From positions 55,614,001 to 55,678,000 of the forward strand of contig NC_087246.1 of the NCBI RefSeq assembly GCF_037042905.1: a stretch of 64,000 bases of DNA, read 5' to 3'. The notes beneath the pieces were generated by a model. The model worked only from the letters and a program-made list of their open reading frames with translations. It made no database searches and was not told where the DNA came from. This DNA is from Lytechinus pictus. Lineage: Eukaryota. This document shows, in pieces, positions 14,318-64,000 of this stretch; position 1 is the first letter of the stretch; each line of letters starts with the position of its first letter. The translations under genes and the position numbers were made by a program.

Positions 14318-14398
14318 AGGAAAATGGATAATTGGTCATCAGGAAAGCAGAAGTTTCTACCCTACCTTATGCCACCTGATGCAGGTTTTGAGCCTTTA
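14318..14398 (+). CDS. FTO: FTO exon 2 ([27 protein letters not shown])
   Basis: tttacag acceptor, GTAAGT donor; LPYLMPPD matches human LPYLTPKD; internal ATG at 14324. Confidence 0.88.
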
Positions 14399-17300
14399 GT
14401 AAGTAAATGTTTATTGGTTATTTCATGAACTTGTTTTAACATGATATTTGATTTGATTCCATGTTTTGTCATATCACTGTCAAAATATTTTTGTGAAACA
14501 AATATTACCAAGTTTTTTAATAGAAATGCTAGAAACTGGAGAGCACAATATAGGGAGCCATTGCCAGATAGCCACTGAATGAGTAAGCTTCCAATTAATA
14601 AAATATTTGTAACAATCCTCTTCATCTCCATCCCTTTTTACTGCAAAGTTGAAAACACTGAGGACAATAATTGTTTCCTCTGAAATCAACTTATCTTGAA
14701 ATGATTAGCTTAAGGTTATGATGGGTTGTGATACCTTTGGATAATTGGCATAAAATTAATGAAAATATTCCTGTGTTATGTGAATTCCTTGAGAATTATG
14801 CTAGATATCCCCTGATATTCCACTCATAATTTCTGGTTAATTTTTTATAACATTCCAATGATTGCATACCAATTCACACTGCATTTTTTCCTTTACATGG
14901 GAAATATTATTTTTGTATGCAGAGAGAAGAAAAATATCCTGACTTTGTTCACCAACCAAGCTCGGAGATTTCTGAAGACCTTGCCCATGATGTAGCATGG
15001 GCTTTCAACAAGTTGGAGTCAGAGGGATTCTTCTATCGCCATTGGGTGGTTGTTCAGGGCAAGCATGTACTGACTCCTGTTTCCAGGACCCTAGTGGGTA
15101 ACCCAGGCATGACTTACAGGTATCTAGGACTCCGAATATTTGCCCTTCCCTGGACCTTCGAGGATAGAAAGGAGCTTAGTGAGGTAGAGAAAGCATGTAG
15201 TATCATTGGCAGATTGAATCAGTACTTGAAAGCAACATCCTGTGCGATATTGAAGGAAAGACAGGTAGATGTCCCAATCCAAAATACAAAAATGGCAAAG
15301 AGGACAGATGAAGGAACCGGAAGTACTTTGGAAAGCAAAGATACAAATGTGGAGGACATTGAGGAAAGGTCAACTGAAAGATTAAGAGATCATTCTGAAA
15401 ATAATGTGAGAACTGGTGAAGATTCTGAACAAGGCAACGGTCCTAGAGGCGAAGTACAAGGCTCGGGAGACAGTATCAATGCTCCAGGAGATTCTTCAAT
15501 GATAAGCAGTGGGAGTGGTTCAGGTGATGCACCTAAGGAGGATATTTACAGAAACAAACGAAAGAGGCAAGAAACAAGAGCCAAGACAATGGACGAAGGA
15601 ACAGATTTCAACGTGGCCCTGATCAATTACATGGACCCACTGAATCCAGAGCTGAGTCTTAAACCAGAACCCTACTATGACCTAGGCCCACTAGCTGTTC
15701 CTTGGCACATGGATGGCAACCTTGTCCGAGGGTCTACTGTAGCGGTCTACAGCTATATCTGTGAGTCTGCATATGGGGCAGGTAGGTGTTGATAGAGTCA
15801 CCATGGAGCAATTCAGCTTGCATGAAAAGAGAAAAATGAAAGAATAATATCAATGAAAGTTTGAGTAAAATTGGACAAACGATGAGAAAGTTAAGAGCAT
15901 TGAATGTTGAGATCCCCCTATTGACGGAAGCTTGATCCGCCCCTGACCAAGGCTATGTATTTGAAATGGACCTATTTCATTAATCTTAGACAGAAAGTAT
16001 TACTAATCATCATGAGTTGCAGGTCACATGATCAAGGCCAAGGGTCATTTAGTATTTTATTTCCCCCCCTCTATTTGAAATATAAATTACTAGTAATCTG
16101 AATTCTTCTCAAAGTGAGCACTGCTGCTATTTTGAACTGTGTAATGCAGGTGAGACTTCCAGAGGCTTTCCACCTGTTTGATTAGGTGCATCAATGAAAT
16201 CTTATCCAAAGTAAAGTTTTTGAAATGTCATAACTTTGAAAGTATATCGTACTTTTTTATGAAAACTTTGACATAACGTTGTCAAGTATTACTGATCATC
16301 TTGCATGAGTTGCAGGGTACATGACCAATATCAAAGGTCATAGTGTCAATTAACTTAGTTTTTTATCATCATATGAATGGTGTTTTTATTTTTCAAGTCA
16401 GCGCTGCTGCTATATCAAATTGCATAATGCAGGCGAGACTGCCAGAGGCATTCCACTTGTTCTCTTTTATGTGTATTCAACAATAACCAGAAAAATTTAT
16501 TGACAAGACAGGAAATTCAAACAAACAAAATTATATGTACAAAACTTTGGTTTTAATGTTACATAATAAAGTTTGTTTCATTGAATAAAATATTATATGC
16601 ACTTTTAATCTTATATGTTCAGTTTACTTTCTGTAAGACTTCAAGTTCAAGTTTTATTAAACCAATCAAACAAGAGACATATTATACAGTTTAACAAAAA
16701 ATGAGAATACATGATAGGTTTGGGACCCCATAGAAGCAGAGCTTGTGAGAGGGGCCCCTTATATCGAACGTAACAACAAGAATGTGATGTAAGATATATA
16801 CAATGATAATCTAGAGAGTAAATAAGAAAAATACAGACAAAAGTCCCCCCCCCCACACACACACGCCCAAATATATTGTTTATCAAGATTCAATTTAAGA
16901 TATTTTGTAATCTTTCAAATATATCTTTATTCTTATATTTTCAGAGAAGAGTAGAAATTGGATGATAGGTATCAACAAACCATGGGATGAGGTCACTCCT
17001 GCTTTAGCTGCCCCCCTAGCCTCTGGTGATGCATACTTCATGCTTGCAGATCTCAATGATACTCACAGGCATTGTGTCATAGCTGGGGATCAGCCAAGAT
17101 TTGCCTCAACCCATAGGGTAGTAGATGTAAGTAATGAATAATTATGTGAAATAGCAGTTATGTTGGATATTGAAAATTTGATGGCCTCATATTGCATGCA
17201 AGAATATATTTCATAAGACATAAGTTGAGTGTATTCTTAAGCTCGTAATTCTCGCTACCCCAAATAGGACAAAAATCTCATAATGCGCGAGACGAGATAA

Positions 17301-20300
17301 TTTTCACTTCGTCGGGTCGTCATCACCACTTCCGGTTCAGAGTTATGCTCGCGCGAGGTTCGCGATACTGAGTTTTCCACCACGCTGAAATCGATGCCAA
17401 TCAGCGTAATATGTACAGATTATAATACGTTTTATCTAATTTGGTCAGTTTTTATTCCATTTGAATTATAAATAGAAATAAAAAATATATTTCACGTGAA
17501 AATGTGAAAGAGAGGGTTGTGATCACGAACTTTCCGAGCGAAAGCGACGTTGTGTTGTTGTGCATGACGGCACTGTTGATCTGAATGGCAAAACAGTGCA
17601 TTGGACTTCCGATCAGGAAGTTGTAATACCGAAAAGCTATCCCATAATGCAATGCGCGTTACAGGGATTTTCCCGGATCTCGGCGAAATCGCTATTTGGG
17701 GTAGCGAGAATTGGTACATGTATGTATGCCAAAATAATACAAATGGGCTTCGAGCTTAATACAAGCTATTTTAATAAATTGCATTTTAGTCTTGTGTAAG
17801 TAATTTTTTTTCTTTTGGTATGGAAACATCAAGTTCATGTGACCATTGCAGACATTTTTTGGCGGTTCCTCGGCCCCCAAACACCAAATCACTCTCTTCT
17901 TTGCGTGTATGTTTGAAACACCCCTCCTTAATCTGTTGGGATTTGATCTTCTGAACAGAGTGGCCATGGGACCCTAGCTTACATCCAAGCACGATGTCAG
18001 TCAGCACTGGAGAATATCATCTATGAATCGGTTGAAGGAGGAGAACAGGGGTCTGATGGGAAACCAGCACTGAGAAGCCTAGATTCTGCGGCTCTCCAAC
18101 TTGCTGAGGAAGTACACAATGAGGTAATTGGTCACATTGCGCCTAGTTAAAGGTCAAGTCTACCCCAGAAGAATGTTGATGTGAATGAATAGAGAAAAAT
18201 CATACTAGCGTAATGCTGAAAATTTCATCAAAATCGGATGTAAAATAAGAAAGTTATGACATTTTAAAGTTTTGCTTATTTTTCACAAAACATTGATATG
18301 CACAACTGAGTGACATGCACATGAGACAGTCAATGATGACCCTCACTCACTATTTCTTTTGTTTTTTATTGTTTGAATTATACCATATTTCATTTTTTAA
18401 AGATTTGGTAAGTAGGACCAACTTGACTGAACCATATACTATTAAACAATACTAATTCCACATGTTCGGAGAGGAATTAATCGTTGTTTCACTTAAAAAT
18501 GAGGAGAAATTAGAATATTTCATGTAATAAAATACAAAAGAAATAGTGAGTGGATGATGTCATCAGTCTCCTCATTTGCATACCGACCAGGATGTGCATA
18601 TAACTGTTTTATGAAATCAAGGGTAAATCTGGTCAACTAAGTATCTCCAAAGCAGAGCTTGAGGAGCACTTGTCCAATACTTACTCGGATAATAAGAAGA
18701 CCATCCCGATGCCTCCAATTTCTGGCCTGGCCAGGCCTACTGAGCCGGGAGAACCCTTTGACCTTGCTGAGCCAAGGCTCTCAGAGGTTGTTAGCTTTTT
18801 GGAAAAGACAAGGACAGGTTCAGCACCAGGGCCTAATGGTGTCCCTTACAAGGTGTATAAGAAGTGTGGGAGATTGAGGAAGTTCTTATGGCGTCTTCTC
18901 AAGGTAGTTTGGAGGCAAGGTGTTGTCCCAGATTCCTGGTGTAAAGCTGATGGTGTTTATATTCCTAAAGAGGAGAACTCCACTTCACTAGGTCAGTTTC
19001 GGCCTATCTCCTTGCTTAATGTTGAAGGGAAGGTCATGTTTGGTATTTTGGCGAAGAGGATTTCTTCCTTTGTCGTTGATCATGGTCTAGTTAATACCTC
19101 TGTGCAGAAGGCCGGGATCCCAGGTTTCCATGGGTGCCTAGAGCACACCAGTATGATATGGCAGACCATACAGCAGTCAAAGAAACTGCGACGGAACCTT
19201 GCAGTTGTGTGGCTTGATTTTGCCAACGCATATGGCTCAGTTCCGCATGCATTGATAGAGTTTGCGATGGATTTCTTGTGGATTCCCCCTCGGGTAACCA
19301 GGTATGTGATGCAGTATTTCCAAGGTTTTAAGATGAGGTTCTCTACTCAGCAGTATACCACAGACTGGCAGAGCCTGGAAGTTGGTATTCCAATGGGATG
19401 TGCGATTTCTCCCATTTTGTTTGTGCTTATGGACGTCCTTGTTAGGTCTGCTGGAGGATTCGGATGTGGTGTGACATTCCCTGGTGCAGAGGAACTACCT
19501 CCAATTCGTGCATTTATGGACGATCTCACTATTCTCTGTCCAAGTACGAAGGCTACTAAGGAAATTATGACTAGGCCCGAGGAATTAATGGATTGGGGAA
19601 GGATGAAATTCAAGACGAGGAAGTCGAGGAGCCTTGTGTTGAAACGAGGTAGGCTAAGTGATTTTCACTTCCTGTTGTGTAGGGAGGAGATCCCATCTAT
19701 ATCCAGGATGAGCCGGTTAAGAGTTTAGGCCGTTGGTATACCGAAGACCTGAAAGATGTAGGAAGAATTAAGGACACTGAGGAACAGATCAGGAAAGGTC
19801 TGGAGTCAATTGATAAATGTGGCCTCCCAGGCAAACTTAAACTGTGGTGTCTTCAGTTTGGGCTGATGCCACGCATCATGTGGCCATTAACTGTCTATGA
19901 GATAGGTTTGTCGTATGTCGAAGCCATGGAGCGTAAGATCAATGTCTATGTTAAGAGGTGGCTGGGTGTTCCAAATTCTCTGACCAACATTGCTCTCCAT
20001 AGTACTGAGACAAAGTTGAACATCCCCGTCAAGTCATTGGTCGAAGAAGTCAAGGTGACGAAAGCAAGATCTTTTATGATGCTTCGTGATTCTAGCGATC
20101 CTGTCATTAGAGATTACCAGCCTGATGTGAAATCGGGAAGGAAGTGGCATGCTGATAAGGCAGTGGAAGAGGCTGAGTCGAGACTGAGGCACAAGGAGAT
20201 GGTTGGTGCTGCCCAAACCGGTCGTTTGGGCCTGCGCTGGACTTCTACCAAGAGGTGGTCAGCAGCTTCAGCCCGGGAGCGGCGCGACCTCATTGTGCAG

Positions 20301-23300
20301 GAGATCAGAGAGGTTGAGGAGGAGAAGAGATGGGCCACAGCAGTTGGCCAGGCCCAGCAGGGCTCATGGACGAAGTGGGAGGGGGCGGAAGCCAGAAGGT
20401 TGACATGGTCTGTACTTTGGCAGATGGAGCCACTTCGTATCTCCTTTGTTGTTCGCTCGACCTACGATCTTTTGCCTACGCCTGTTAACCTCAGCAAGTG
20501 GTATAACGAGCCTGATAAGTGTAGTGCTTGTGGAGGGAGAGGTACCCTTCAGCACATACTTAGTGCCTGCGAGGTTAGCCTGTGTTGTGGGATGTATACT
20601 TGGAGGCATAACCAGGTCTTGAAGGTTGTTGAAGAGGCGGTTACAAAAAGGGTGACATCTCATGATTCTGGGAAGGGTGTTGCAAATGGGGGTATGCCCC
20701 ATATTGATTTTGTGAAGGAGGGGGCTAGGCCAAGATTAAAGGCAAGGTCTACGAGGCCCAGTATCTTGTCCTCAGCTCGTGATTGGCAGGTGAGAGTCGA
20801 CCTGGACGGAAAAGGGAGTTTCCCACAGCATGTGATGTTTACAAATCTCCGCCCCGATATTGTTTTGTGGACTGACTCTGCAAAGGTAATAGTTTTAGGA
20901 GAGTTGACCGTCCCTTGGGAGGATAATTTTGACTATGCCTTTGAGCGCAAGCTCACAAGATATTCTGAACTTGTGGCAGAGTGTACAGGCAAAGGCTGGA
21001 AGGTGTTTTGCTTCCCCTTTGAGGTTGGTTGTCGTGGGTTCATAGCAAAATCATTGTCTAGGTGGTTTCGGGAGTTGGGTTTCTCAAATAGAGAGAATAA
21101 GCATGCTTGTAGGGCTGCTTCTGAGGCAGCAGAGAAGGGTTCTGCTTGGATTTGGACCAAGTATGTCCAAAGGAAGAGGGTGACCAGCAATTAAGCAACT
21201 TCTTTTTGTCGTTTATTTCTTTCTTTCTTCCCCCTTTTTTTTCCTTTTCTTTCCCTTTTTTTCCTGTTACCAGCGGGGAAGGTGGTGCTTTGCATTGCTG
21301 GCCCACCACCAAGAGGGAGTATTGTTTCTAACGGGCCGAAACTCCCAGTGACTGGTGGAAAACAACTGAGGATTCCCCCTGGTAATGCATGAGGCAGCGT
21401 TCTCATGTTTGTTTAACTTTTATGAAATCAAGGAAACTTTAAAATGTCATAACTTTCTTATTTTACATCTGATTTTGTTGAAATTTTCAGTGTTTTGCTT
21501 GTTGCATTTTTTTATTTTTATTCAAATCAACTTTTTGTTGGGGTGGACTTGTCCTTTATGAAATTAATTTTTGTAGTATACAATCGATGTTCAATTGTCT
21601 GCTCCCACAAACAATCCTTCACATGGCTTACCCATACAATGAGATAAAGGTCTCTTGCAGAAAGAGTTGTATTTATTTCCATCTCTGAAAATCAGACGCA
21701 AGTCCCAAATGAGTTCTGATTGGTTGACAATCAAGGTGCTTTTGAATATTCATATTGATTTCAGCTCTTGTTATTACATGCCCCATATTAATAAAGTGCA
21801 CTTTATTCAGAAAAGGCACGACAAAACTCGGCAAAATATCATGTACTGTCTATACGTGATTAGACTAAAAGCCCCATACACTTCCAAGAGACTTCTAAAT
21901 CCTCTATAGGTTTAATCCAGAGTGATTGTGTTATCGTCCGTCAGAACTCACCTATTTCAGCAGATGTGTAGTAATTAGCATCATTGATTGAGCCTGTGCC
22001 TATGAAAGTTTTTAACAGAAATATGGCACAATATTCATGCTGTAGATCATCACTATCATGAGATAAAGTGCCTCATTTATGTTATATTATTTACGTCAAA
22101 TCTCTAGTTCTAGAACCAAATTTGTATTGACAAACTTGTGAGTGAAAACACAAATCAATGTCATATTAGTATCATTTTGGCAAAGCAGAGTCATAAATAA
22201 TGTTGCAAGAGTTTGTATGTACTCATCTTTTGATCTCCCCCCCCCCAAAAAAGAAAACTTTGCATTGAACTTCGTGATGTCTCTACATGTCTTTGTAGCA
22301 AGGATACCCCCAAAATGTTGGATCCAGTAACCATCACCGTCACTAAATTTCACTGAGCTTTGATGTGCCATTGTTGCACCATCACTTAGCAATACTTTTG
22401 TCATGGAGAGCTCAAGAAATTATCCATTGTTCTTTGAAAGATGTTGTAATATAAAAAGAAATAATTTAGATATGTATTTTTTTCCCGTTTTATGTATGTT
22501 TTATGCTAAAAGAAATTGTCATGTTTTGAAGAAAAATCTGGACATTCATTCACAGTAATGTATTTTTTTTTATAAATTAAATTTTAAATTGAAAAGTTTT
22601 CCCTATCCAAATCATTGTGTTTTGATTAACACGCTTATAAAGTACATTTACATAGATTATATAGAATAGGCCTACCTTGGAATAAGCTCTACCTCATTAT
22701 ACCTGTGGTTGTACTTCACATGTTATTAGGTTGAATTTGAATGGCTGAGACAGTTTTGGATGCAAGGTTCTCATCATGCTACGGAGAGATCATTCTGGAT
22801 CAAACCTATGGAGGATTTAGAACACTCTTGGGAATGTATGGAGCATATGGTAAGTCTACATATTTAACAAACTATTGCAAAAAATTAATCAATTGTAGAT
22901 CCCTCCCCAAAAAAATTATATTATTAATCATAAATATTCTGCTTTGATGTAGCAATTGATACATCAGAATGATGCTTCATGTCTTTTAAGCATTTTAAAT
23001 GATTACCCCGGTCATTGCATTTTGACTTGCCCATACACAATGTTTACTATTTCTCCATTCCTTGGGGAGCATGAGTTTTCAATTGCTAGGCTTACTAAAT
23101 TGACTTTCGCTTCCCCCCTGTTACCCATTTAACACCTGGGTGACGAGTGGCAAAGTGTGGAGTGATGCTTTCCTGAAGGGTACAAACTTGCATTTGATTG
23201 CTGATCTTGTTCTTGTAATAAAATGTTCCAATATAATTGCTTTAGAGTGACTAGTAGTTGATCAATTAATTCCAGTTTTAATTTGATATTTACAAGTTGA

Positions 23301-24411
23301 TTTTTGTTGTAAATAAGATTCTTGCATTACCCTTAGGACAAAACAAAAATGCCTAGTAAATGGATTTCAAGTGCCTAGGGACTCTCTCTTTTAGGAAGTT
23401 ACAGAATATTTAAGTTGCAACTTTTTCTTATGAAATTTTGTAGACCAAGCTTGCTATTGAAGCATCTATGAATGTAGAATCATGTCAAGAAGCAGCACGT
23501 ATCATCAGAGACATCTTGCCTTTCATCGAGAACAGAGAGAGACAAAGATGTATTTGTCTTAATAGGTAATTGACAATGCTCACAATTTTTGTACAAGCAA
23601 GGTCGTTGAACTTGTTACATTAACAAAATTATATTAATGACATTAACATTTATTTCTCATACTAGTGAAATTGTTACTTTTGATTGACTAATTGCAGATT
23701 TTCTTTATAAATTTGTGTATTTGTTATTTATAATAAATTTTGAGAAATTGAAAATTCAAATTTTGGGCTTGCACCCAGTAAATAAGATACATTTGCACTG
23801 ATGGACAAGTCAGAACAAATATTGGAACCAGTGGGATTTGAACTTCTCATCTACTGATTGCCGGTCAGCGACTCTGTCACCAGGCCATCACTGGTCCATG
23901 GCACAGTCATGATGATATAAGAACAAGTACATCAGTGCCTTTGAATTTTAAGCTGACTTGAATTTATACATGTAGTCCACTTTTTAGAAATTTGAAATTT
24001 TGTTCACCATGAAAGTATAAATATATATTTTGATAAACAATCAAAATGAGTCAACAAAGTATTGAAGAGAATGCATCCACGGAGGAATAGAGTTTGTTGA
24101 TAGGTGTCAACATAATACGTCAAGAGTTAAACAATACCTGGGACCTAGAGCTCTCATAGTCAACGACTCTTATCCAACAGTAAATTTTCTCCACTTTGCA
24201 AATATGCCCAATATCAATGTATTCTTGAATGAGAGGGAAGGTTATCCCAGGACTGTCTTGAATTGACATCTCATTTATTTTCACCATTTCCAGGTATAGT
24301 GGAGATGCTCTCCTCAGTATCAAACCAGACCGCCTTCCACTCTATAGACCGACCTGGGATGACAGTGACCTTTCACGACCTTTGCCCTTTACCCTTACCA
24401 AGGTCATCTAG
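14318..24411 (+). CDS. FTO: FTO alpha-ketoglutarate-dependent dioxygenase (RNA demethylase) gene; 7 homology-supported coding exons, about 548 aa (578 aa with candidate exon 1)
   Basis: join(14318..14398,14923..15781,16945..17126,17959..18123,22730..22849,23444..23565,24294..24411) is one open frame with GT-AG introns and aligns across both the catalytic and C-terminal domains of human FTO. Confidence 0.96.
14923..15781 (+). CDS. FTO: FTO exon 3 (catalytic domain, HxD motif)
   Basis: [65 protein letters not shown]; donor G|GTAGGT, phase 1. Confidence 0.95.
15990..16462 (+). repeat. Two tandem fragments of a Helentron/DINE-like repeat
   Basis: Repeated GGTCACATGA-CAAGGTCA motifs; ends GCAGG(C/T)GAGACT.CCAGAGGC.TTCCAC.TGT at about 16146-16177 and 16429-16460. 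Confidence 0.4.
16945..17126 (+). CDS. FTO: FTO exon 4 (equivalent to human exons 4+5 without the intervening intron)
   Basis: [56 protein letters not shown]; contains the H307, R316 and R322 equivalents. Confidence 0.95.
17247..17712. mobile_element. MITE
   Basis: 21-bp perfect TIRs AATTCTCGCTACCCCAAATAG / CTATTTGGGGTAGCGAGAATT. Confidence 0.75.
17959..18123 (+). CDS. FTO: FTO exon 5
   Basis: [20 protein letters not shown]...EEVHNE matches human GTLDYILQRCQLALQNV...EEIHNE. Confidence 0.93.
18623..21417 (+). mobile_element. HERO-type (R2-group, REL endonuclease) non-LTR retrotransposon, 5'-truncated
   Basis: 16-bp TSD TTTTATGAAATCAAGG at 18607-18622 and 21418-21433; RT, CCHC and PD-(D/E)xK domains; 3' UTR stem GGGAGT...ACTCCC at 21315-21346. 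Confidence 0.9.
18625..21194 (+). pseudogene. HERO RT/REL-endonuclease ORF with one frameshift near 19700
   Basis: [47 protein letters not shown]; after the shift [12 protein letters not shown]...LPGKLKLW; [29 protein letters not shown]...ELTVPWE...RK. Confidence 0.9.
22730..22849 (+). CDS. FTO: FTO exon 6
   Basis: [13 protein letters not shown]...[18 protein letters not shown]; 120 nt, phase 0/0, as for the corresponding human exon. Confidence 0.95.
23010..23180 (-). mobile_element. SINE fragment (Deu/CORE-like central domain)
   Basis: Minus strand reads TTTGCCACTCGTCACCCAGGTGTTAAATGGGTAAC. Confidence 0.5.
23444..23565 (+). CDS. FTO: FTO exon 7
   Basis: tttgtag acceptor, TKLAIEAS...[12 protein letters not shown]...NR, phase-2 GTAATT donor as in human. 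Confidence 0.88.
24294..24411 (+). CDS. FTO: FTO last coding exon
   Basis: [38 protein letters not shown] matches human ...[21 protein letters not shown]. Confidence 0.9.
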
Positions 24412-24984
24412 AGGTTGAAAGTGAGGCTGATTGAAGTGTAGTAGGAATCATCGTGTACCTGACCTGTCTTAAACCAGACCACCTTCCACTCTACGTCAAT
24501 CGTTGACAGTTGTAAGTTATTTTTTCATTTAAATTCTCACTATTTCCAAGAAACAATTTGAAGTGGTGCATCAGATGCTTTAATCATTAAGACCAATCAG
24601 AAAAAAGAGGCGGGGGTGAAGCACCTGGCACAAGCGCAAATTTGCACCCTTTAAAAATATGATGCATGGGATGAAAAGTAAACATCCCATGCCCCCTCTC
24701 CCCTTCTCTCTCAGAAGTGGTGCCTGAGGCAGTTTCATCAGCCGTCACTTCAAGGAGATAGTCAACTTTTCATAAGTTGGCCTTCTAAAGTCAAAGCAAT
24801 TTTTAGACCAGATTATGTGAGACGTGTTATTTACCTTCTGTAAGTCGAATTTAAGTGGAACAGATTTGTATGGTCCAAGGAGATTGACATAAGCAGGGTT
24901 ATCTGTACTGTCATAATTTTTGTTTACCTGAATTTAAATTTGATTTGAATATTGTATGTTAACCATCCCACATATATGGCTTTG

Positions 24985-25228
24985 AAAACAGGAGACAAAG
25001 ATGTATTTGCCTTAATAGGCATTTGTCAATGCTCGCAATTTTTGTATTAGCAAGGTCGTTGAACTTGTTACAATAAAAAAAAATGATATTAACATTTACT
25101 AGTGAAATTAATTATTTTGATTGACTAGTCGCAAATTTTTATTTTTTTTTATTTTTGTATTTGTTATTTACAATAAATTTTAAGGAATTGAAAATTCAAA
25201 TTTCTGGCTTGCACCCAGTAAATAAGAT
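24985..25228 (+). repeat. Local duplicate of the FTO exon 7 3' end and following intron (source about 23530-23788)
   Basis: GAGACAAAGATGTATTTG.CTTAATAGG...TTGCACCCAGTAAATAAGAT occurs twice; the donor is GC in the copy. Confidence 0.9.
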
Positions 25229-27182
25229 TGTATTATCTATGCACTTGTCACAGAGGATACATTGTACAATAATTCAATCTTTTGTAAATTATTTTTTAAA
25301 TAAATGCATTCCAGGTTGACGGAGAAGATGACACTCAGGGTCCCTCTCATTCTTTCTCCATAGATGAGTCTACTTTCTGGTCTTATTCAAAGCAGTCAAT
25401 TATGTAACAACACTACTGATGCCAGAATGGTAAGTTATTATTTTCACTATAAAATAAAAAGTAACTAGATTACTGGATATTCTTCAATAGATGCTTAATA
25501 AATCATATTGCCAAACTCACACAATATACATATTTTTTGATGGATGGTCTGAGCTGGGTGCATAATACATGAATGATATATATTTGTCTTGAGCAGAAGG
25601 TAGATTGTCAACCATCACGAAAAGCTCATGAGATATAAATTATGTCTCTCCAACTTCATTCAGGATAAAATTGAAATTGTCATGCTATCATTTTTAATAA
25701 GCCATGTTAGTAACGATGCAATCTGATACACCGGTAGCATTAATGACTGGCACATATGTCCTACCGAATCTGATTAGATGATGTGATATCTGGTGAATTA
25801 GGATTTCATTTGTAACTCAAAGTTCATTTACATCAAATAGGCTCTTTTCAGAAGGAAACATTTTTTGAGACATTGTTTTGTCCCAGATTGCATTTGTCCC
25901 AATGCACAATTTACCTCATTTACTATGTACATGTGCTGTGTAGTATGACAATTATTTTTAAGGAAATAGTATTAGAATATTTTGCTCTCTCACTTTATAC
26001 TTGCAGTACAACATGGATACACCCCTATCTTGTGTTAACCTTCTTCCAAGCATAACTGAGAGAGATAGTCTACCAGAGACAAGGACATGATGCCCAAATA
26101 GAAATCTTCATCTACACAGAGTGACTGGTGTGTGAACAGTTATTGATATTTACTCTTGGGTATGATCCATTAGAGATGATGAATTTGATACCAAACTCTT
26201 CATATACACCCTTCATCTGGTATTAATAATCTGTCTTGTGTATACGAAAGTGATGGTTGCCAGGCATTTGTTCTTGATACCAGTCTTTATCTAGACAATC
26301 TGTCTGGTGTTAACCATATTCTATATATACATAGCCGGATACTTAACTGTCTCGAAGTGATTGAGAAAGGCTGTTTATATTGCATCTAAGAACTGGTGTT
26401 TGCTGTAAAGCAATGGAATCACCAAAAGGATAAATTCTCCTGAAGACCATGTGCTCTCCACATGACCTTGGAATACACCCAAATTGTCGGTCCAACAGTT
26501 TCTACCATTTTTTGTTGTTGTATTTTAATGTGAGGGCAAACCTTCCAAGGGATAATTATCATTTTTATTCATGATATTCTAATTAAACATCATGAAAAGA
26601 AGAAAATTTGATCTTGTCGAGACTTGAAACTGAGAGCAATCATTCTACAACGTTCACTAACACCCACAATCATCAGACAAGTCATTGGGGCTGCTGGAAG
26701 GCTACATAATGCATGGATGATAGGATTTCCACAAAGGGCAATTCCATGCTAGAAAAATCAGCAATTTTCACATCATTTTCAACCTGCTGTCCAAACGAAC
26801 AAAGAACTTCAATTTGCTTTATGGTAATATTAAAGTACTACTGGGTAGACATGCAAAAAACTGACAACCAACAAAAAATATAGATGAATGTAAGCTTAAA
26901 ATGTTGCATTTTTGCCTATAATTTAAACATAATCATTTTTTTTTGTGTTGGTTATTAGTTTTTCACATGACTACCCACTATAGCTTTATCATTGACAAAA
27001 AGGATATTTTATTGCTCAAGCATTCAGCTAGGATACGAGAAATTGTCAAAATGTCCTGTACGACACGTATGGAATCGCCCCAAAATGACTGCCTCGTCTT
27101 TTTCTGCAGCACCATGATCTTGTCTATGGTGTGAGATTCAAACCTGACCAGTGAGTCTTAATAAATACAGACAAAGCATCCT

Positions 27183-27188
27183 TTTATT
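27183..27188 (-). promoter_or_regulatory. Candidate polyadenylation signal for Sowah
   Basis: AATAAA on the minus strand about 2.5 kb past the stop; other AATAAA sites also exist. Confidence 0.25.
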
Positions 27189-28083: not shown

Positions 28084-28504
28084 AGGGGAAGTAGGTCCTA
28101 GGGATAAATCGGTTTTGATGAAGGAGACAAATTAGAGAAAAATATTGAAGGTTTGATGAAAATCCATTAAAGAATAAGAAAGTTATAAATGGTTGAATTG
28201 GACGTCATATGCAAGCAGCTTCCCCATATATCATGTAAGATGACTTCTATTTTTCATTTAATGAACAAGAATGAAAATAATTTTCTTATAGAAGGGGGTA
28301 TGAAATGATGTATCTGGATATATATCAGCCCCACGAATAAAATCACTTTCTATTTTATTTTTTGGTGGGGGAGAAAATAGCATTTAAAGGATGAGATACA
28401 AGTACACGCCATCACAAAATAAAACTTTTATTATCAAACCTTCACTAATATTTTTCTCTATTTTTTTTCCGCATTGCAGGTAATCATCAGGGTAAACTTC
28501 CCCT
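28084..28504. mobile_element. Old TTAA-type (Kolobok-like) MITE
   Basis: AGGGGAAGT...ACTTCCCCT|TTAA termini; internal motifs resemble the 33693 family. Confidence 0.55.
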
Positions 28505-29605: not shown

Positions 29606-29662
29606 ATTTTGTTCAACATTGTTTAAAGTGTGCACCGGGCCTTTGTTATTCTGATAACCAGC

Positions 29663-53550: not shown

Positions 53551-56500
53551 CTGTAATGATACCATAAAAAAGAATAACATTCAAGATTACATGACTGGAG
53601 ATGAATATTCAAATAAATATATCTGTGTGTTTTCCTAGTTGCTCCGTTCAAATCATTTTGTAAACGTGATGACCACCAAGCTGGTTGCAGGGCTCTAACA
53701 ATGAGTAATTAATATCTATTGGTAAACCTTTAAACATTTGAGAGACTGTGTTTCGATTGTCAAAAGACAAAAAACAATGTAGCATATGTGCAGGCAAGGG
53801 CATTCTCAGAAAAAAAAAGGTATAATTTAAGACAAGGGATGAATCGCTGCAAAGTAATAAATATAAAATCATTTGAAAATGAAAGTTGTTTTCAGAGGGA
53901 AAAGAAAAAAAAAGGATAAGCAGACAGTAGAAAGTTTAAATACAAGCCTCAAAATAAGAAAGTTATGAATTTTAAGAGTTGTAAAAAAATTGTAATCACT
54001 AAATAATTATGGAGACTTGGAATTGGCTAAAGATGTAGGCTAGTCTTCCATTTGCTCCAATATGCAAAAAAAGGCAAAAATATTTTATTCAAAAGTTTTA
54101 CTTTCAAGAACACAGCCTATGGGAAAGTTGTCCCTACTACTTTTCAAACATTACCAATTAGAAATTGATAATCTTTAGTGCCTATCAGATTTCTTGAAAA
54201 CTTTCAACATTCTTTTTATTTTTTTTCTCTTTCACACACCTCTTTTATGACCAAGGTCAGATTCCCATTTAAATGTGTTATGTTTGTCCCATACTCTTCA
54301 ATAACTTTCTAAAATGTAGGCCGGCACAAATACCTTTAAACACAGTAGGCCTTTAATCGACTTTGTTAACAAAAAAAGTCTAGAATTTTGGAAAGGATGT
54401 CATAAAAAGTGCAAGTACCTTTATGAGGTCATAATAAACATACTTAAGGTGTTTTTAAAGAAAATGGTCAAGAAAAAAAAGCTCAGACCTCCAAACAAAC
54501 AGTGACATAAACCTAGCACCATGATAGGTCCTACACTTGAGGTCATATAACAACGATTATGAGGCGTTAATTGTGTGATTAAAATGTAGCAGGATGTATT
54601 TGGCCTTCATGTTGCACATTAAGGTTCATGAGGGATAGATTTATGAAAGGGGTCCTTACAAAATGGCATTGGATACAGTATAAAATACCCTCAAAAAGCA
54701 GGCCAAGTATATAATTTCCACTGACATGCAAAAGGCTGCAAGTTCAATTCTTATATAAGAGACAGAAGGTCCCTGTGCATACAATGTGGTGAAATAGTGA
54801 GCAATAATATTAATATTTCTTTTTTTTTAATTGCCTTTAGGCCAATCTAAAATCTAAACCGATATTCAAGGAGATAACTAAATTAAAAGCAAGCAATCAA
54901 ATTGTTTCACATATAGTAATTACTCATACAAGGGCTTTGATGAAGTACTAATCTATGTTTAAAAAAAATGAAACTTTAAATTGCTGTTGGCTTAAATGAA
55001 ATAAATGTATAATTAAAATTCTACCAGGTAAAACACCTTTACCAGATAGCCACAGAATTACAGATGAAAATATTTGACAGTGAAATGGAATTTTTAATGG
55101 CAGTTTAGAGATTTCAAGTTAACCTTTATCAGGATCTGCTGAACTGAAACAAGTTACTAGCCTCTTGACGAGGCCCTGGCGACTGTTCTTTGTCGATTAT
55201 GATAATGATCCCGAGCGAAGAGAGGGATACCATAACTTGCGCAAAAGTAGAGCCCCCATTAACCCAAACTTGATCACAAGGGGGTAAATTATATAAAAAA
55301 AAGCATCTTTCCCTTTCCCTTCTTTTGATGATTTTTCACTACATTGGCAAATTCCACATCTAACAAAGATATCGCAATGAATACTTCATCAACACTTCAA
55401 TGACCTTTCAAAATCTATCTCTCAATGCTTGTCCTGGAAAGAAACTAACAATCCATAACATATTCCATCATCAGTCAGTTCCAATGGGATAACTCATCAT
55501 TGCACAATATTCAAGAAATCTTGATAAACAATAGCGTAAACCTGCCAGCACGTAACTTCAGGCAGAGAAAGGCCGGTGTATGAATTATAGGCGTTTAATG
55601 CACTCGTTAAAAGTAGCGATATTCTGTTATCCTTCATAGTGCACTTAAACGGTTGACATAAAATGCTATACTTGAACTAAAGCTATCAACCCTTACTGAA
55701 GGACTTTCACTGTTTTTACAGCTATCTCCAACAGATTATACTATCTTTTTGCCACATTTTATTGGTTTTGATGTGTCCCCTGTTTCAGTTTCTTCAAAGG
55801 AAAACATAATAGAAAACATTTTATGTATGCATTTGAGTTCCCGACTGAATGAGAAGCCATGGATCATAACACTTTTGAAAACATCCTCCTGCCTTCTATA
55901 AAGGCACTTACAAAATGTGAGGATAAAGGTTCAAAACTCAGCCTATTAATACCAACTTCGCCATCCAGGCAGGCAGTAATTTAGGAAACGGCAGGCCTAT
56001 GCAGGGCAAACAGAAGAAGAGTTTAATTCCTGAAATGAGTAACTAAACTGTAGTTCTAACAGCACCTACTCCAATCCCCTAATAATAGCATCAACAAAAA
56101 ATACATGCAAGTTATGGTTGCTTATCATACTAAACATTTAATTTGAGAATACAGAATGCACTGATATTCAACACCGTGGTCATGCATCCTATTAATATTT
56201 GACCCATTGTCTACTTGAAATTGTAAATTCATGTACAAAGCTTATGGGAATGAGAGACGTCAGAAAGTAAAGTGTTAACAATAGAATGATGATTATCTAC
56301 CGAAGTGAATATGAATTTACAATAACCTCCATTGCCTGGGCTGCTGTTTCCGCTTCATAAATGATTTGTAGAAGTTTTTATGGGGCATATTACTTGCAAT
56401 AAAGTTTTTAATGACAGATATGTGCTTTGGTATGCGGAGGGGCCTTCTAACATTCAACAACATGTCAGTCTATATCATGTGCGCTTGTATTTTTTCTTAT

Positions 56501-58927
56501 TTGCAATCATTGAGATGGAATTTGGCTCCATACAAATTGAAAATATACAGCTATGAGTATGCAGATTAATTTTTTCATGATCAACGCGAGGTTTATTTGT
56601 TGAAAAATCAAAGTTACAGACCGGTGCTTTTGGTGTTCAACTTCAACCAAACTGTCCTATCAGTCTACTTTGCATCAAAATAGTCTGTTTTGGTTTAACA
56701 TGTAAATTTTTATACTTTTGCAGCAAATGACAGTGGAAGTCCTATTCTAAATTAATGCAACAAAACTTTACTATTGTAATTTTGTCTTGGTTTCCAGGAC
56801 ATCAAAAGCTTGTGTACTGTAGCAAAGGGATACAATGTCTGAATGCGTTTATTTTCAGGTATTAAATATCATAGGAATCAGCTTTTACTGTATTGTATAG
56901 TTTAACAAAAAAAGTTAACTGACCATTTCAAGTTGGATCAAAGAGTTGGATGTCTGTCAATCATCAGACATGAAGTGGTCAATTCAAGGGTTATTAGTTG
57001 ATCCCATACAAAAGAAAATGAAACTGTAAATGCTAGAGGGGAGGGGCATTACAGTGGGGTTGACACCCCCCCCCCCCCTACCTTAAACAAGCTGCAAAAT
57101 GCTACAGCTCTAGGTGGTCATAAACTTGTCCTCCACTTCTGGCTCTTAAAAACATGTCGACAGGTGTGAATTTGACTCTGGAGAACTGGGATCAAACTTC
57201 AGTCTTGCCCCCCTAAGCCAGCTCAAACACATGTACAATCGGTTTAACAACCCCACTCGGCACCCTGCCGAAATTTCCTCAGTCCCTGTGGCCCCGCTCC
57301 CCAGCAAGCCCAAACTCCGCCCAAGTTATCTTTCTTTTGATACCAAAGGGTCTCGCTGGAGTTCAGGAGAGAGAGTTACAATGCCATAAATAATTCCTTC
57401 TCCTTGACTGTACTTTTATCTTGAGGTTTTGGAGACATAAATGATGGGGGACAGACACAGAATGTACAGCCATTTCCCTTGAAACTTCAGCTGTAACAAC
57501 TTCCTTCATTTGTTACAAGCTACTATCCATGGGGGACACAGGGAGTACTGCTGAGTGAGAAGGGGTGGGGAGAGGAGTGGGTTTCTCCAGGATAACAAGG
57601 TCCTAGTTTTCTTCTGGTCTTTGAAATGCACACTACTCTATGCAATTCTTCCTAAAAATTTAGGATCTGTAGCTAGTTGTTTTCCTTTACACAGTAGGGT
57701 CCATGCTTTTAATAAGGTACTTACAATCATAGCGATTGCATGTCAGAAAACAACAAACAATATACCCAGACATTTTAAGCCTAAATTCATACTTGATACA
57801 TGGTTATCATTCAACCACAAAAAAATGAAGAGGACCTCAACTAAAATAGATTTTCATGTATAATCACATAATACATACTCTAAAACATATTTTAATTTCA
57901 TATCATATTCAAAACATCATAGTTTCAGGACTTACAAAAACCATATAATGGAACTGGAATAGGGACCAACATTTTTTATATAGATTTACCAAAACTTAAT
58001 CCCTTGGAGACTGAGACGGTGTATATTTGGGCTGGAATCTATGGAAAATGTGAGATATAGCAAAATTATGCAGTGTCCAATGGGTTAAGAGAGGCTTACA
58101 GTCTATGATGAAAATACTGAGACAGCACAAGCGTATAATGATAATAATACTCTCATCAGTGCTTCCGCTCTTCCCGAAATCCAGGAAATACCGGGAACTT
58201 TTGCTATTTTCCAAGATCATTTCGGGAAGTGAGAAATTCCGGGAAGTTATCATTTCCAAGAATGATATTATTTTCTGAATATTATGTCAAAACCTATCTC
58301 AAAATTGGATCTTTGTAATGAAAATGTCAACAATTTTGCTCGCTCGCAATTCTGTAGCCTGATATACGTCTTTGGTCATATTTCGCCCCTCAAAATGTTT
58401 GGCTCATTACGGCACTGGGCCCTATATTTCATCTTTTTTGTGTGTAGAAGAGAAGTATAACATCTTATGAAAGACTGGAGAACATTTGTAAAATTCTGAG
58501 ATATTTTGTAAAATTCCAGTAACTTTCAGGGTAAATTACAGGAGGTTTCGTTTTGAAAAGTGGAAGCACTGACTCTCATTCACAAGTGCATGCAAACAAT
58601 GGATGCAACACCAAGGAAAAACTAAAGCATGTGGAAGATTCATTGCAGCAGGTTCCTGGTGATTTTGTTTTGATGAAGTATTTAGAAAAAAATATTTGAC
58701 CAATGAAATCTGACAGAAAACAAACAGAAACAAATGAAACAAACTCATGAACTGTAAACAATGGAAAGCCAGACAGCTCGAGATTGTAATTCATCTCAAC
58801 AAGTTCTAATCAATATTTTGAAGGTTTAAGGAGTTGGGGGTACTTTGGGGAATGGTTTGTGGTTCATTGGTCCTGGTAGAAGAGGTCAAGTTTAATGAGA
58901 TGGATGATTTAAGAGGACCTGGTCCAG

Positions 58928-59057
58928 GGGCCCCGTGACACAAAGCTTAGCAATGATCGTAGAACATTTTTCTACGATTGATTCCATTGACTACAATGTA
59001 TAATCAATCATGAAAATCAAGCGTACGATTAATTGCTAACCTTTGTGTCACTGGGCC
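58928..59057. mobile_element. Short Harbinger-type MITE
   Basis: GGGCCCCGTGACACAAAGCTTAGCAAT / ATTGCTAACCTTTGTGTCACTGGGCC; TSD CAG. Confidence 0.8.
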
Positions 59058-59060
59058 CAG

Positions 59061-59347
59061 GGGCCTGTCTTACAAAGAGTTGCGATTGATCGGATCGAAC
59101 GCAACTATGGAAAGCCAGCAAAGTCAACATATAAAATGCATGTTTTAAAAAAAAAATTATAGATATGAATGTATATCCATAATTTATTGATTTCTTGACA
59201 ATTTGGTGTGATCTCCTTTGTTTATAAAGGACATATTGCAAATTTCCTGTAGAAAATATTATGACACTGATGGATTTCCATAGTAAGAATTGATTGGATC
59301 AATCATAACTCTTTGCAAGACGGGGGGGGGGGGGGGGGGGGGGGGCC
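59061..59347. mobile_element. Harbinger-type MITE (same family as 46960-47430)
   Basis: GGGCCTGTCTTACAAAGAGTT / AACTCTTTGCAAGACGGG..GCC; shared body AACTATGGAAAGCCAGCAAAGTCAACAT. Confidence 0.8.
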
Positions 59348-62300
59348 AAGGTCTCATAACCTGGTCCTTCACCCTCCAGTATTACACCTTGGGGGTGTTT
59401 CACAAAAAATTAATTCATGCTTATGTGCCAGTGCGCACATGATATATGCTATATATCACACACAACTGGAAATTTAAAAGCAATGTTCAATCATATTTAA
59501 GTCCTTGTGAATCACCTTCCTTGCTTGATGTGTGATACTCATGATTTAGCATCAGGTAAAATTGATCTTGGTGTAACTTAGTAAAGTGTAAGTCTACCAA
59601 CAACACATTCATTGGAATAAATGGAGACAAAAAAATAATCAAACACTGAAAATGTCATTCATCCGGTCAGATGGGAATAAAGGAGATATTGGTGTTTTAA
59701 AGTTATTGGTGATAATTTCAGTGAATGCTTGTTTGTTTTCCTCTTTTTGTTGAAATCAACTTGTTGTTGGATGTGGACTTTGAATTAGATCTGGGCAAGG
59801 TGGTTAAAAAAAGGTATCTAGGACCATCTAACTCACTTCCTTTAAAGCCAAGTTTGATGCTGCAGGGATAAAATATGTCAGGTTTATGTTTCATTAGATT
59901 TTTCTTGCAGATTGTAGACAAGAGATTCCTGGCTATCTACGGACTTACTGACCACTTGCAAAAGCAAATAAGCTTTTATGATAAAAATTACTTTTTGCTG
60001 CCTCTGGCATATCTGGACAAATAATATGAGCTGACACTTTTCTAACTTTTACAGGGAGAGCAAAAATAAATGTTTCAATTTTTCTTGAAATATGATTTGA
60101 AATGTCTTGACTGCCCACATGTTCCACCGCTGTCACATAACATCACACAAAGATATATTCCTACAAACCAAACTTAATTTTTTGTAATGTGGAAATTCAT
60201 AAAATTTTCATCTAAAAATTGTCAAATTCTGAGGGTTTTATACATTTTGAAAATGTTATCATACAACATTTTGCCCAATTTCAAGGCCAAATAATGCTGT
60301 GAGATATATTTTCATGTAATTAATATTCATGTTGTGCAATCAAATAAAAATGGAAATATTCCCACTTGAATCACTTTTCAGTTTTCCCATGAAACTTGAG
60401 GCTTCACAGGTTGCCACCAAAGGCTAGAGTGCACCTGTGCATTTTTTGTTGTACTTCTTTTGAAATTGGAAGATCCATGAATTTGCAGTTCGTTGTCACT
60501 CCATCCTTTTTACGTCTATGATTTGATCTGAAGTGTTGGGCTGGTATATACAAAGAGAATGAATATCCAAAGTACATGCAAAGATTTTGGTTGATGGTAG
60601 GATATGGTATTTTAAGATAAATTTAAATTTGTCTTCCAATCTTCATGATCTAGATAGAGATTCAAAGAATCCCGTCATTTCTCTGATTCCTATTTTGTAT
60701 ATTCTTCTCCAATTCTCTTTATCCTATTGCTTTGAATTATATGGGCCGGCCTCAATATTTTTTCCTCACTTTTCTTTCCATCTCACAATCAATTATTGTC
60801 TTTGTTTCATCCAGTCTCCCTATTTTTTTCTATCTTTCTCTTACATTGTCCATCTGCACCGACACTGCTACCAGCACCCATACAAAGAAACGTCACTTTC
60901 TATTTGCACATTTGCTCGAGTAGTGCTAAAACAGAGAAGTTGAAGTTCAAGGGTTATGATGGTGGTATTTTTATGAGGGGTCAGTTATTTCTGTTTGGTA
61001 TTTCAGTAATAGCTATTTACATTCAATGGGAGAGTATAACGGGAGTATAGTAGTTGTGACAGTAACGAGCTATGAAACATTAGAAACGGCACCCTCCTTC
61101 GGGAGCTTGTAACCAGCTGGTAAGGACAGGGGAGGGGTTACGAGCTTTTTCATTTTCCTTTTATCTTGGTTTCAGAAAGCATTTAGTAGATGTTGAGTGA
61201 TTCTTTCCATGAGTTTAGAGCTGACAACGATATTGAATGGCAATCTGTGATTATAACGACCTTTGTTTATCTCATTTCAAATATACAGATATTGAAACCT
61301 TGAAGCATATTATTTTAAAAGGGATAGTTGCACCCTTTCCCTTATGCAAGTATTTATTACTTTATAATACTAATTGAAGACAGTTAGAGTTTGATGACAA
61401 TTTCAAATAAAAGGAACTCATATTACACATAGATTTACTGTTATCTGTTATTCATACAGCCAATCAGAGCTCTCTCTATACATGTAGGCCTATACATATA
61501 TTTAAACACAATTTGTTTCTTTCAGCTTTCATTTTCCCTTATTTGATTTTGTCTTCTGTGTATTCTTGTATATAGGAATTCAATCATTACAACCAAATCA
61601 TGAAGAAAATAACACCTCTATCTTTTCTTTAGCTTTAAAATACTAAACTATCAAAAAATATCGGTGAATAAAATGAGAGATATTACTGTACTGGTAAAAT
61701 CTGTAAACCTCAAACAGGGGACTGTGAATTTTGAAATGGGAAAATAATACTTCAAGGAAACAGCCTCAAGCCAGAGACAAATTTTAAGGAAATACGCTGT
61801 CAAAGAACCTCCGAACACCCAAGAAGACAAAACATTTGTCCGTCAGAAATTCCTTTTCCCCGACACGCAGGTAGCCAGCCGTGCATACATCTAATCTCAT
61901 AACTCTATAACAGCCGTGCACCGTTGTTGATTCATACACTGCTCAAATCATCTCTTTGATCGGCCGTCATCTTTTTAAATTTCGACATAAAATGGAGGCT
62001 GAGTCAGGTACGTTTGCGAGACATTTCTGGCGCAGCTGTACGTCGGTTAATCCCTTGTATGCAAGCTGACCCGTCATTCAAACGCCATGTTAACATGACA
62101 CAGAACATGTTATGACTTAAAAAAGGGGCTCTGACATCGGGATGATTATCTAGGGGGATAAAAAGAGTATGTATGACAAGATATATGTATGTCTTTTAAA
62201 AGCAGCAAACCTGCAAGAAGATGCTGTGAGAAGCTTAGTCATCATTAAGGACGTTTAACCCATAAAAGAGCCAACATCTTATCATTTACTAAACTGCATT

Positions 62301-64000
62301 TAGAAATTGAAAAACGGTACTACTTTTGAAGTGATGTGGATTGGAATTTGATTTTTTTCTCAGGAGCTACAACGAAACATACAGAAAAAAGGTGTCACAT
62401 TCAAACAAGATGTCATTTATTTAATTGATTACATTAAAATCATTCAAGATTTTTAAAGTATAATGGAGTAAGAAAAGAAAAACATTCATTGTTTGCTTTC
62501 TAAAATAAAGTAAAAGAATATAGAAAGCTATGCAATGCAATATATTTTTTTCTTATTTTTAATGGTGCTGTTTCCTCAAAGCAATAAATAGAAATCATGG
62601 AGTCTTTTACAAACCTAGATGGTATTTTTTTTTAGAAACTACCTCATTTAAAATTTTTCCTACAGAAATCTGCAAACATGATTCGAGAGACTCACTAAAA
62701 AAAAATTCCTGGCAGAAACCGGCAAAGTTCTCTTGACGCCGAAACTTTCAATATATAAAAAAAACACTTGATAGATCATATAAAGTGGGTTGGTAATAAA
62801 GAGGCAGTGAACAAAAACAGGCCAAACCAAAGTACTTACAGTTTTAGCAATAAATATATTGTAGTTAATGTTAGGTGATGGAATTAAAATGGTCACTCTT
62901 TCCTTTTCTGGATCTTAAAAAAATTAATGATGCGAAATCTGGTATATTCCTACTCCATCCCCCCCCATATCTTCATTTCTATCATATTTTCAATTTACCT
63001 TTCCCTCTCAGGATTCTTCTGTTTCTTATTCTCATGCTGAATGATTTTGTGCAATGGGTAAAATGTTCCATATTATCCTTCATTGATTTCCCCCTCTGCC
63101 CGATTACTTTTACCCCCCCCCTCGTCTTTTCTTTCCATCCATTCAATTATTCTATCAATCCATCTTTTCCCCTTGATTCATCCACCCTCAACCCTCTCCC
63201 GTCCATTCTCTTCATCCAATGCTTCCTCGTTGAATAAATATTTTTATACAATGTTGGGTTAGAGAATGGCAAGCACGCCATAAATAAAGCCGGTTCTCCC
63301 TTGATTCTTGCCTAAAGTGTCTGGCGCTATGACAGTGATCGATACATCATTAGCTGTGAGAAACACCGAGAGTGAAAGCACAAACAGAGTGTCTCTTTCC
63401 CTTTGAGGGGTGCTGATACCGCTCTAACAACCAAGGCAAACCAACAACAGGGTAGGCCATTTGTTTTGGTAGAAGCAGCACCTTGTGGTCATTTTTATGA
63501 GCATCTCGTTGTCTCTAGAGGGCGGCTGTGGGTGAGAGTAGTAACGGGGTTGGTGACCAAGCTGGGTAAAGTTCAGTGCCAAGGTGAGGGTATAGAGACC
63601 CTTATTCTCGTGAACTCGAGATAGACAAATACAGATAGATGAGTGAAAGATAGAAAGACAGAAAAGAAAAAGAAAATTGAGATCAAAACATAGTAGGTAA
63701 AAAGAAATGCAGATAGAAATCCTATTTCTGAAGAAAACTGAAACTCACACAGATAGAGAGTACACTTCTGATTTTCAATATCAAGTATTTTTTCAACAAC
63801 AAAACATAGCAAACATCTCCCTATAGAATATGACACCTCCACCCTGCTTCTTTCTCCCTCTCTTATTTCTCTCACCATTTCCATTGCACGAACAGGATTT
63901 ACTCAATATGACTATCAATTCCTTTCATTACAGTTGCAGGGTTTTTTCCAAACATAAACAAAAAATCCAAGTTCTTCAATCTCCCTCTCTGCGGCAGTGC

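Follow-up and report, generated by a model that had tools for sequence, protein, structure and literature searches.

FTO and Sowah lie tail-to-tail, beside an Irx-type homeobox gene, in the sea urchin Lytechinus pictus: a candidate ancestral gene neighbourhood

We analysed a 64,000-nucleotide stretch of the genome of the sea urchin Lytechinus pictus, hereafter the window (contig NC_087246.1, here C2; C2:55614001-55678000), and give positions to its right as "window-equivalent", that is, in the same numbering carried rightwards beyond 64000. The window holds the coding region of FTO on the plus strand and the 3' end of the ankyrin-repeat gene Sowah on the minus strand. The stop codon of FTO at 24411 faces that of Sowah at 29663, with a stop-to-stop distance of 5,251 bp, a convergent (tail-to-tail) orientation and no recognisable gene between them, exactly as a first-pass annotation of the same DNA had described it from the letters alone. 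That annotation had also predicted an Irx gene to the right of 64000, and an Irx-type TALE homeobox is indeed present on the same contig (C2:55889151-55889306, +), head-to-head with Sowah. The resulting order is FTO>, <Sowah, Irx>.

The exons of FTO were located by tblastn with P0062, an FTO-like protein of L. pictus, and with shark, frog and fish FTO. P0062 aligns to the window exons at about 90-100% identity, and the coding region extends over about 19 kb (5760-24411, +). The start at 14318 given by the first-pass annotation had to be revised, this being the second annotated coding exon and the first lying at 5760. The features of the gene are the following.

5760-5849, plus strand: annotated FTO exon 1, amino acids 1-30 of P0062 at 100% identity in tblastn, with P0062 as sole support
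14318-14398, plus strand: FTO exon 2, carrying the conserved N-terminal motif LPYL.P.D..F
about 14923-15781, plus strand: FTO exon 3, encoding the larger part of the catalytic domain FTO_NTD, with the HxD iron ligands (WHMDGN)
about 16945-17126, plus strand: FTO exon 4, end of FTO_NTD, with the second His and the 2-oxoglutarate Arg residues
17959-18123, plus strand: FTO exon 5, where the C-terminal helical domain begins
18670-21194, plus strand: retroelement in an FTO intron, two long open reading frames of 352 and 442 amino acids, the first with an RVT_1 domain
22730-22849, plus strand: FTO exon 6, with the FTO_CTD motif (tblastn)
23444 to about 23565, plus strand: FTO exon 7 (tblastn)
about 24277-24408, plus strand: last coding exon of FTO (tblastn), then the stop codon TAG at 24409-24411

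A 291-amino-acid open reading frame (ORF) at 14917-15792 matches the Pfam domain FTO_NTD (PF12933) with an E-value of 6.5e-53, and a genome scan for FTO_NTD matches this locus only, FTO thus being single-copy. Exons 5-8 align with the C-terminal domain of FTO from shark, frog and fish, P0062 bears FTO_CTD (PF12934) in a precomputed Pfam listing, and exon 6 is conserved even at the DNA level in a sea star, Diadema and both acorn worms (blastn). Three urchin motifs have aligned counterparts in shark FTO, WHMDGN pairing with WHHDEN, THRHCV with THQHCV and RFASTHRV with RFSSTHRV; in human FTO, an AlkB-type Fe(II)/2-oxoglutarate dioxygenase, the corresponding HxD...H residues hold the iron and the arginines bind 2-oxoglutarate. 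FTO of the window is a complete orthologue and probably an active enzyme. As to the retroelement in its intron, the long open frames and a G+C content of 0.43-0.45 (about 0.44, compared to about 0.35 in the surroundings) suggest that it may be young. Just past it, in the same intron, part of FTO exon 6 is present a second time in inverted orientation (21875-21928, minus strand, 72% protein identity). Downstream of the gene, a contig joins 24511 to 25315 over a GT..AG interval on the plus strand, which could represent a spliced FTO 3' untranslated region (UTR) or an alternative last exon.

For Sowah, tblastn was run with P0169 and with proteins of L. variegatus and S. purpuratus against the window and the next 200 kb. 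The gene comprises about 16 coding exons over 178 kb of the minus strand, from the ATG at window-equivalent 207650 to the stop at 29663, and only its last six coding exons, the 3' sixth of the gene, are contained in the window.

29735-29666, minus strand: last coding exon of Sowah (tblastn), then the stop codon TGA at 29665-29663
30558-30485, minus strand: Sowah exon with LMPPPSGYTVPNRSRKLRSSSDK (tblastn)
33016-32802, minus strand: Sowah exon with the family-specific C-terminal motif WGSAEN…TPPVTPP (tblastn)
40951-41154, minus strand: alternative 3' terminal exon of Sowah, ending as in P0048
45889-45809, minus strand: Sowah exon with the third ankyrin repeat, ADINKRDFSGRKPRHYL (tblastn)
47516-47444, minus strand: Sowah exon with the second ankyrin repeat, GYTPLHVAAMHNKEAIMQFLVSEY (Pfam Ank, E=4e-5)
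about 53550-53464, minus strand: Sowah exon with the first ankyrin repeat, ALHWGAKHGKKEMIR… (Pfam Ank_3, E=5e-4)
53551-64000, minus strand: Sowah intron of 83 kb, of which this is the first 10 kb; next upstream exon at window-equivalent 136413-136529

The identity of these exons to the Sowah proteins of L. variegatus, S. purpuratus and Diadema reaches 100%, and the spliced order of the ankyrin exons is backed by the proteins P0048 and P0052. At the other end of the gene, exon 1 (window-equivalent 207650-207522) shows 98% identity with P0174 of L. variegatus, which has PF25877, and exon 2 (about 197498-197436, window-equivalent) holds the RQKFKDFINEVATVK motif of P0174. P0052, from Diadema antillarum, is named SOWAHB-like by NCBI, and its 90% cluster includes P0169, a 594-amino-acid protein of Diadema setosum with PF25877 (WHD_SOWAH) and Ank domains and a gene span of 257 kb; homologues of P0169 from urchins, insects, crustaceans, fishes and others are named SOWAHA, SOWAHB, SOWAHC or sosondowah. 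The PF25877 call on P0169 and P0174 is that of a precomputed Pfam listing, and the assignment in L. pictus is indirect, via the identity to P0174. By homology to urchin proteins that bear PF25877 and Ank, we therefore identify the ankyrin gene as Sowah, as had been proposed from the letters. With the 120-amino-acid Sowah exon as query, a protein search gave fragments from urchins and unspecific ankyrin proteins and no full-length Sowah, and the protein clusters of the Sowah and Irx exons carried only the generic labels Ank and Homeobox_KN. In the genome, every Sowah match falls at this one locus, showing that the gene is single-copy and has no retrocopy.

Of the 121 proteins scoring best in the Sowah search, 28 have the WGS.E motif, compared to 0 of 106 FTO control proteins, and its carriers are an urchin, the clam Solemya, sharks, a chimaera, teleosts and caecilians. 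We propose the C-terminal WGS[AV]E motif, found at 32.9 kb here, as a diagnostic of multi-exon, parental-type Sowah genes. Sowah also appears to use alternative 3' ends, either the 41-kb terminal exon (P0048) or short isoforms ending in KKVCSF ahead of the ankyrin exons (P0174, P0176); the latter, with the exon at window-equivalent 136413-136529, would keep the winged-helix domain and be without the three ankyrin exons of the window. Within Sowah introns, we noted a 1061-amino-acid open frame resembling a non-LTR (long terminal repeat) retrotransposon (window-equivalent 137705-140887, minus strand) and a GAT-type triplet repeat running for about 400 bp (126.7-127.2 kb, window-equivalent).

The interval between the two stop codons was inspected separately.

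24412-29662, no strand assigned: UTRs and intergenic DNA between the convergent 3' ends, with no recognisable gene

The longest ORF of this interval has no Pfam match, and the only Rfam element in it is a weak (marginal) tRNA-like one at 29348-29420. A tRNA-derived repeat lies at about 29224-29621, within the probable Sowah 3' UTR, and RNA reads stack on it at 95-99% identity. Because most of these reads run into unlike sequence, they derive from many other copies of the repeat. Over 24-30 kb the RNA reads are sparse and repeat-dominated, neither confirming nor contradicting the gene models. The contigs of one run, whose status as RNA is a guess, are continuous over 27274-29739 at a roughly tenfold greater depth than beyond, and the Sowah 3' UTR probably measures about 2.4 kb (about 27274-29662).

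To the right of Sowah, a genome scan for Homeobox_KN (PF05920) found a match on the same contig at C2:55889214 (plus strand), with 42.9 bits against a cut-off of 24 and an E-value of 5.7e-11. The exon concerned begins at window-equivalent 275,151; 211,151 bp separate it from the right end of the window, and the ATG of Sowah is 67.5 kb away. The homeodomain is spread over two exons and followed by an acidic tract, and its sequence together with this tract resembles the signature of Irx. Only weak matches (E 2.5e-7 or worse) were obtained with the solved domains of TGIF, PKNOX, MEIS and PBX, about half of the residues being identical to TGIF1, and no Irx homeodomain is among the solved structures of the PDB. 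When the genome was searched with the homeobox exon, one strong match was obtained, the next best being 51% and 43% identical. By signature and by exclusion of the solved TALE classes, the gene is thus best classified as Irx and would be the only one in the genome. Ten ORFs of 106-145 amino acids in the Sowah-Irx gap, read except for the 9.65 kb just upstream of the homeobox exon (C2:55878001-55887650), are without a Pfam domain. Three TALE matches clustered on C7 are Six genes: C7:19591828-19968238 contains three SIX-type homeobox genes within 380 kb, as expected for a Six1/2, Six3/6, Six4/5 cluster.

We then compared the locus with that of other animals, viewing 10 kb either side of FTO in each species. 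In the acorn worm Glandiceps talaboti, an RPGRIP1L-like gene (minus strand) and FTO (plus strand) are followed by an Ank gene (minus strand) beginning 2.9 kb past FTO, of which the exon KWGSAENVSQSKKDKTPPITPPESP matches an urchin Sowah exon with an E-value of about 1e-4. In Saccoglossus kowalevskii, FTO (plus strand) is followed 2.1 kb on by a small minus-strand gene, and the homologous Sowah exon, opposite in strand to FTO, lies 3.5 kb past it and shares 78% DNA identity with Glandiceps in a colinear arrangement. The Sowah exon …FFNKPLKWGSAE…TPPESP lies within the downstream minus-strand gene of both acorn worms, and the two loci are colinear at the DNA level over the FTO exons and the Sowah exon. 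That an echinoid and two acorn-worm families share one convergent FTO/Sowah junction is far beyond chance, there being thousands of genes and only two places directly beside any one of them, and argues that the junction was present in the ambulacrarian ancestor. This recurrence in two independently made acorn-worm assemblies also speaks against the adjacency of the window being a product of misassembly or of a rearrangement that arose recently in Lytechinus only, and contigs of other L. pictus runs show no conflict over 27.3-29.7 kb or over FTO's 3' end. Such an error might still be suspected from the fact that no read or contig examined bridges FTO to Sowah, that the window is rich in retroelements and that RPGRIP1L is displaced by 18 Mb in this genome; on balance, we regard it as highly improbable.

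RPGRIP1L and FTO are arranged head-to-head in the sea star Asterias, in Glandiceps and in the catshark, where RPGRIP1L (minus strand) is followed by a 550-kb FTO (plus strand) with no other gene within 10 kb. The human RPGRIP1L and FTO genes are also arranged head-to-head. Given its occurrence in sea star, acorn worm and shark as in humans, the bidirectional RPGRIP1L-FTO pair is, by comparison of gene order, older than the vertebrates. In L. pictus, exons of RPGRIP1L type (C2-C2_1) are found on the same chromosome at C2:37540431-37541187, 18 Mb from FTO. No RPGRIP1L exons were detected by tblastx upstream of FTO in Diadema, Amphiura or the window, a search of low power in which the query was the poorly conserved 5' end only. 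FTO is only about 5 kb long in the acorn worms and in Diadema, and in Diadema setosum FTO and the 257-kb Sowah lie on contigs of equal length, which we count as support for their linkage.

Taken together, we consider it likely that FTO>, <Sowah, Irx> is an inherited arrangement and that RPGRIP1L-FTO-Sowah-Irx was the order in the ambulacrarian, and probably the deuterostome, ancestor. The vertebrates share the RPGRIP1L-FTO pair and have IRX3/5/6 next to FTO, which makes this order the simplest ancestral state for deuterostomes. The FTO-IRX neighbourhood is very probably older than the vertebrates. The first-pass annotation had put forward both an ancestral FTO-Sowah-Irx order and a pre-vertebrate linkage, and these ideas are supported: the three outcomes it had named against them (a scaffold arm free of Irx, an adjacency missing from other ambulacrarians and chordates, an ankyrin gene other than Sowah) did not occur. 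As an upper bound, FTO has been reported only from deuterostomes and marine microbes, and the block would therefore be at most deuterostome-wide. In the history that we envisage, FTO, confined to deuterostomes, would have come to lie between RPGRIP1L and an older Sowah-Irx regulatory block in the deuterostome ancestor, as a bystander on the margin of the Irx regulatory domain. In vertebrates, the FTO-linked copy would later have lost its Sowah, RPGRIP1L would have moved 18 Mb off in echinoids, and sea stars would have gained genes, or suffered a breakpoint, after FTO.

Several observations weigh against this history. Outside L. pictus, the adjacency was found in Glandiceps and Saccoglossus. 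In Asterias amurensis, the RPGRIP1L-like gene (minus strand) and FTO (plus strand) are followed by genes for an aquaporin and a G-protein-coupled receptor (both plus strand), so that the Sowah junction is broken, and in Diadema setosum and Amphiura filiformis neither a Sowah exon nor a called gene was found within 10 kb of FTO. The acorn-worm views, 10 kb either side of FTO, cover the order as far as Sowah. Only exons were aligned by blastn of the available short flanks, which yielded no conserved non-coding DNA. On the chordate side, the 120 best FTO matches include no amphioxus or tunicate protein, and support comes from vertebrates alone, of which none examined has Sowah on the FTO contig (catshark and pike carry a multi-exon Sowah on a different contig). 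Any Sowah between FTO and IRX3 must accordingly have been lost before the catshark and pike lineages split. Finally, on the human map, IRX3 points towards FTO, whereas the urchin Irx points away from it, and an inversion or inverted duplication must be assumed. Beside these points, we record that a 68-bp Asterias match to a Sowah intron, tried as conserved non-coding DNA, was rejected as an AT-repeat plus a piece resembling a short interspersed element, and that no neighbouring genes were shown beside the Sowah genes of Solemya and Rhinatrema.

The chordate observations could also be read to mean that the junction is ancestral to Ambulacraria only, with the FTO-IRX3 adjacency of vertebrates having arisen independently. 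There is no direct chordate case of Sowah beside FTO, no cephalochordate or tunicate FTO is among the 120 best matches, and IRX3 differs from the urchin gene in its orientation to FTO. However, two independent juxtapositions of FTO and Irx are very unlikely, at a rough estimate a few in a thousand even on one chromosome, and the head-to-head RPGRIP1L-FTO pair, common to ambulacrarians and vertebrates, shows their loci to be homologous on the FTO side. We thus judge a separate origin in vertebrates to be improbable.

A further possibility concerns why the genes stayed together. FTO could be a constrained bystander within the Irx regulatory domain in ambulacrarians too, enhancers in FTO or Sowah introns having kept the genes together by selection. 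The survival of the junction in the urchin and acorn-worm lineages would fit this view, as would the Irx enhancers described in Sowah introns of flies, amphioxus and fish (PMC12311624, PMC5010895), the regulation of IRX3/5 by vertebrate FTO introns within the same topologically associating domain (TAD; PMC5585340), and the listing of Irx among the genes whose cis-elements show transphyletic conservation in echinoderms (PMC13317027). In the supplements of that echinoderm cis-regulatory paper, there is no mention of Irx, SOWAH or FTO. Against this view, the junction is broken in Asterias, which keeps RPGRIP1L-FTO, the approximately 5-kb FTO of acorn worms and Diadema has little room for enhancers, and the available flanks yielded no conserved non-coding DNA. 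We consider this explanation rather unlikely, if less so than a separate vertebrate origin, and favour inheritance of the RPGRIP1L-FTO-Sowah-Irx order. A more far-reaching version of that history, which we offer tentatively, is that FTO settled between RPGRIP1L and Sowah's 3' end, where it stayed for more than 500 million years, that the human obesity-associated IRX3/IRX5 enhancers in FTO introns may stand on pre-vertebrate Irx ground, and that the FTO-IRX3 interval may be the remnant of a lost Sowah.

Parts of this picture are established. The Irx-Sowah linkage across bilaterians and the Irx enhancers in Sowah introns go back to Maeso et al. 2012 (Genome Res 22:642), as cited in PMC5585340, PMC5803294, PMC8793726 and PMC12311624; FTO lies inside the IRX3/5/6 TAD (PMC5585340), and its intronic enhancers act on IRX3/IRX5, as summarised there with citation of Ragvin 2010, Smemo 2014 and Claussnitzer 2015. 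Our literature search found no paper that ties FTO to Sowah or to an invertebrate Irx gene; Maeso 2012 is known to us via citations, and an earlier mention there is possible. Like the described Iroquois-Sowah block, the urchin locus has a multi-exon, large-intron Sowah head-to-head with its Irx-type gene, both single-copy and with no recognisable gene between, and from the Drosophila deficiency map it likewise follows that sowah has its 5' end towards ara. It differs in having FTO next to Sowah's 3' end, an arrangement also found in acorn worms. Compared to the vertebrate RPGRIP1L-FTO-IRX3/5/6 locus, Irx is again the next developmental neighbour downstream of FTO, and the head-to-head RPGRIP1L-FTO pair is common to acorn worm, sea star and shark. 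In contrast to vertebrates, which have no Sowah between FTO and Irx, the urchin has one of 178 kb; it also has one Irx-type gene instead of three Irx genes, pointing away from FTO, an RPGRIP1L 18 Mb away, and an FTO coding region of about 19 kb as against 550 kb in the catshark. FTO has been described as a deuterostome gene novelty otherwise reported only from marine microbes (Simakov et al. 2015, PMC4729200). Similarly, the FTO homologues among our 120 best matches are ambulacrarian or vertebrate only; whereas that study addressed the presence of the gene, the present data concern its position.

Two side observations concern the vertebrate Sowah genes and the left part of the window. The first-pass annotation had stated that tetrapods replaced Sowah with intronless retrocopies, a statement that does not hold universally: the caecilian Rhinatrema bivittatum keeps a multi-exon Sowah of 106 kb (P0207) with WHD_SOWAH. 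The caecilian genes (P0207; P0180 and P0212 of Geotrypetes seraphini) have several annotated isoforms and the fish/shark-type WGSAEDL C-terminus, and the view that all tetrapods replaced the multi-exon Sowah by intronless retrogenes may need an exception for caecilians. In the window itself, a second retroelement ORF with RVT_1 lies at 284-1438 (plus strand), and a 72-nucleotide tRNA at 3656-3727 (minus strand; Rfam tRNA, 60.9 bits) has the anticodon UCA and is labelled SeC by ARAGORN, yet is too short for a selenocysteine tRNA. It probably belongs to a tRNA-derived repeat family; a DNA search of the genome missed even this copy, its words being very common.

If the reading of an inherited order is correct, two stories would merge into one locus history, namely that of the Iroquois-Sowah block, a textbook case of enhancer-held synteny, and that of the obesity variants in FTO, which act on IRX3/IRX5 and not on FTO. 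The conserved block would grow in deuterostomes by one gene, FTO, or by two with RPGRIP1L. FTO would have bordered the Irx landscape since the deuterostome ancestor, and its bystander status in humans would be inherited rather than a vertebrate accident. Urchins and acorn worms, with a small FTO and a single Irx, would then be tractable systems for locating the end of the Irx regulatory domain, and a gene thought to have come into deuterostomes from outside animals would receive a dated genomic address.

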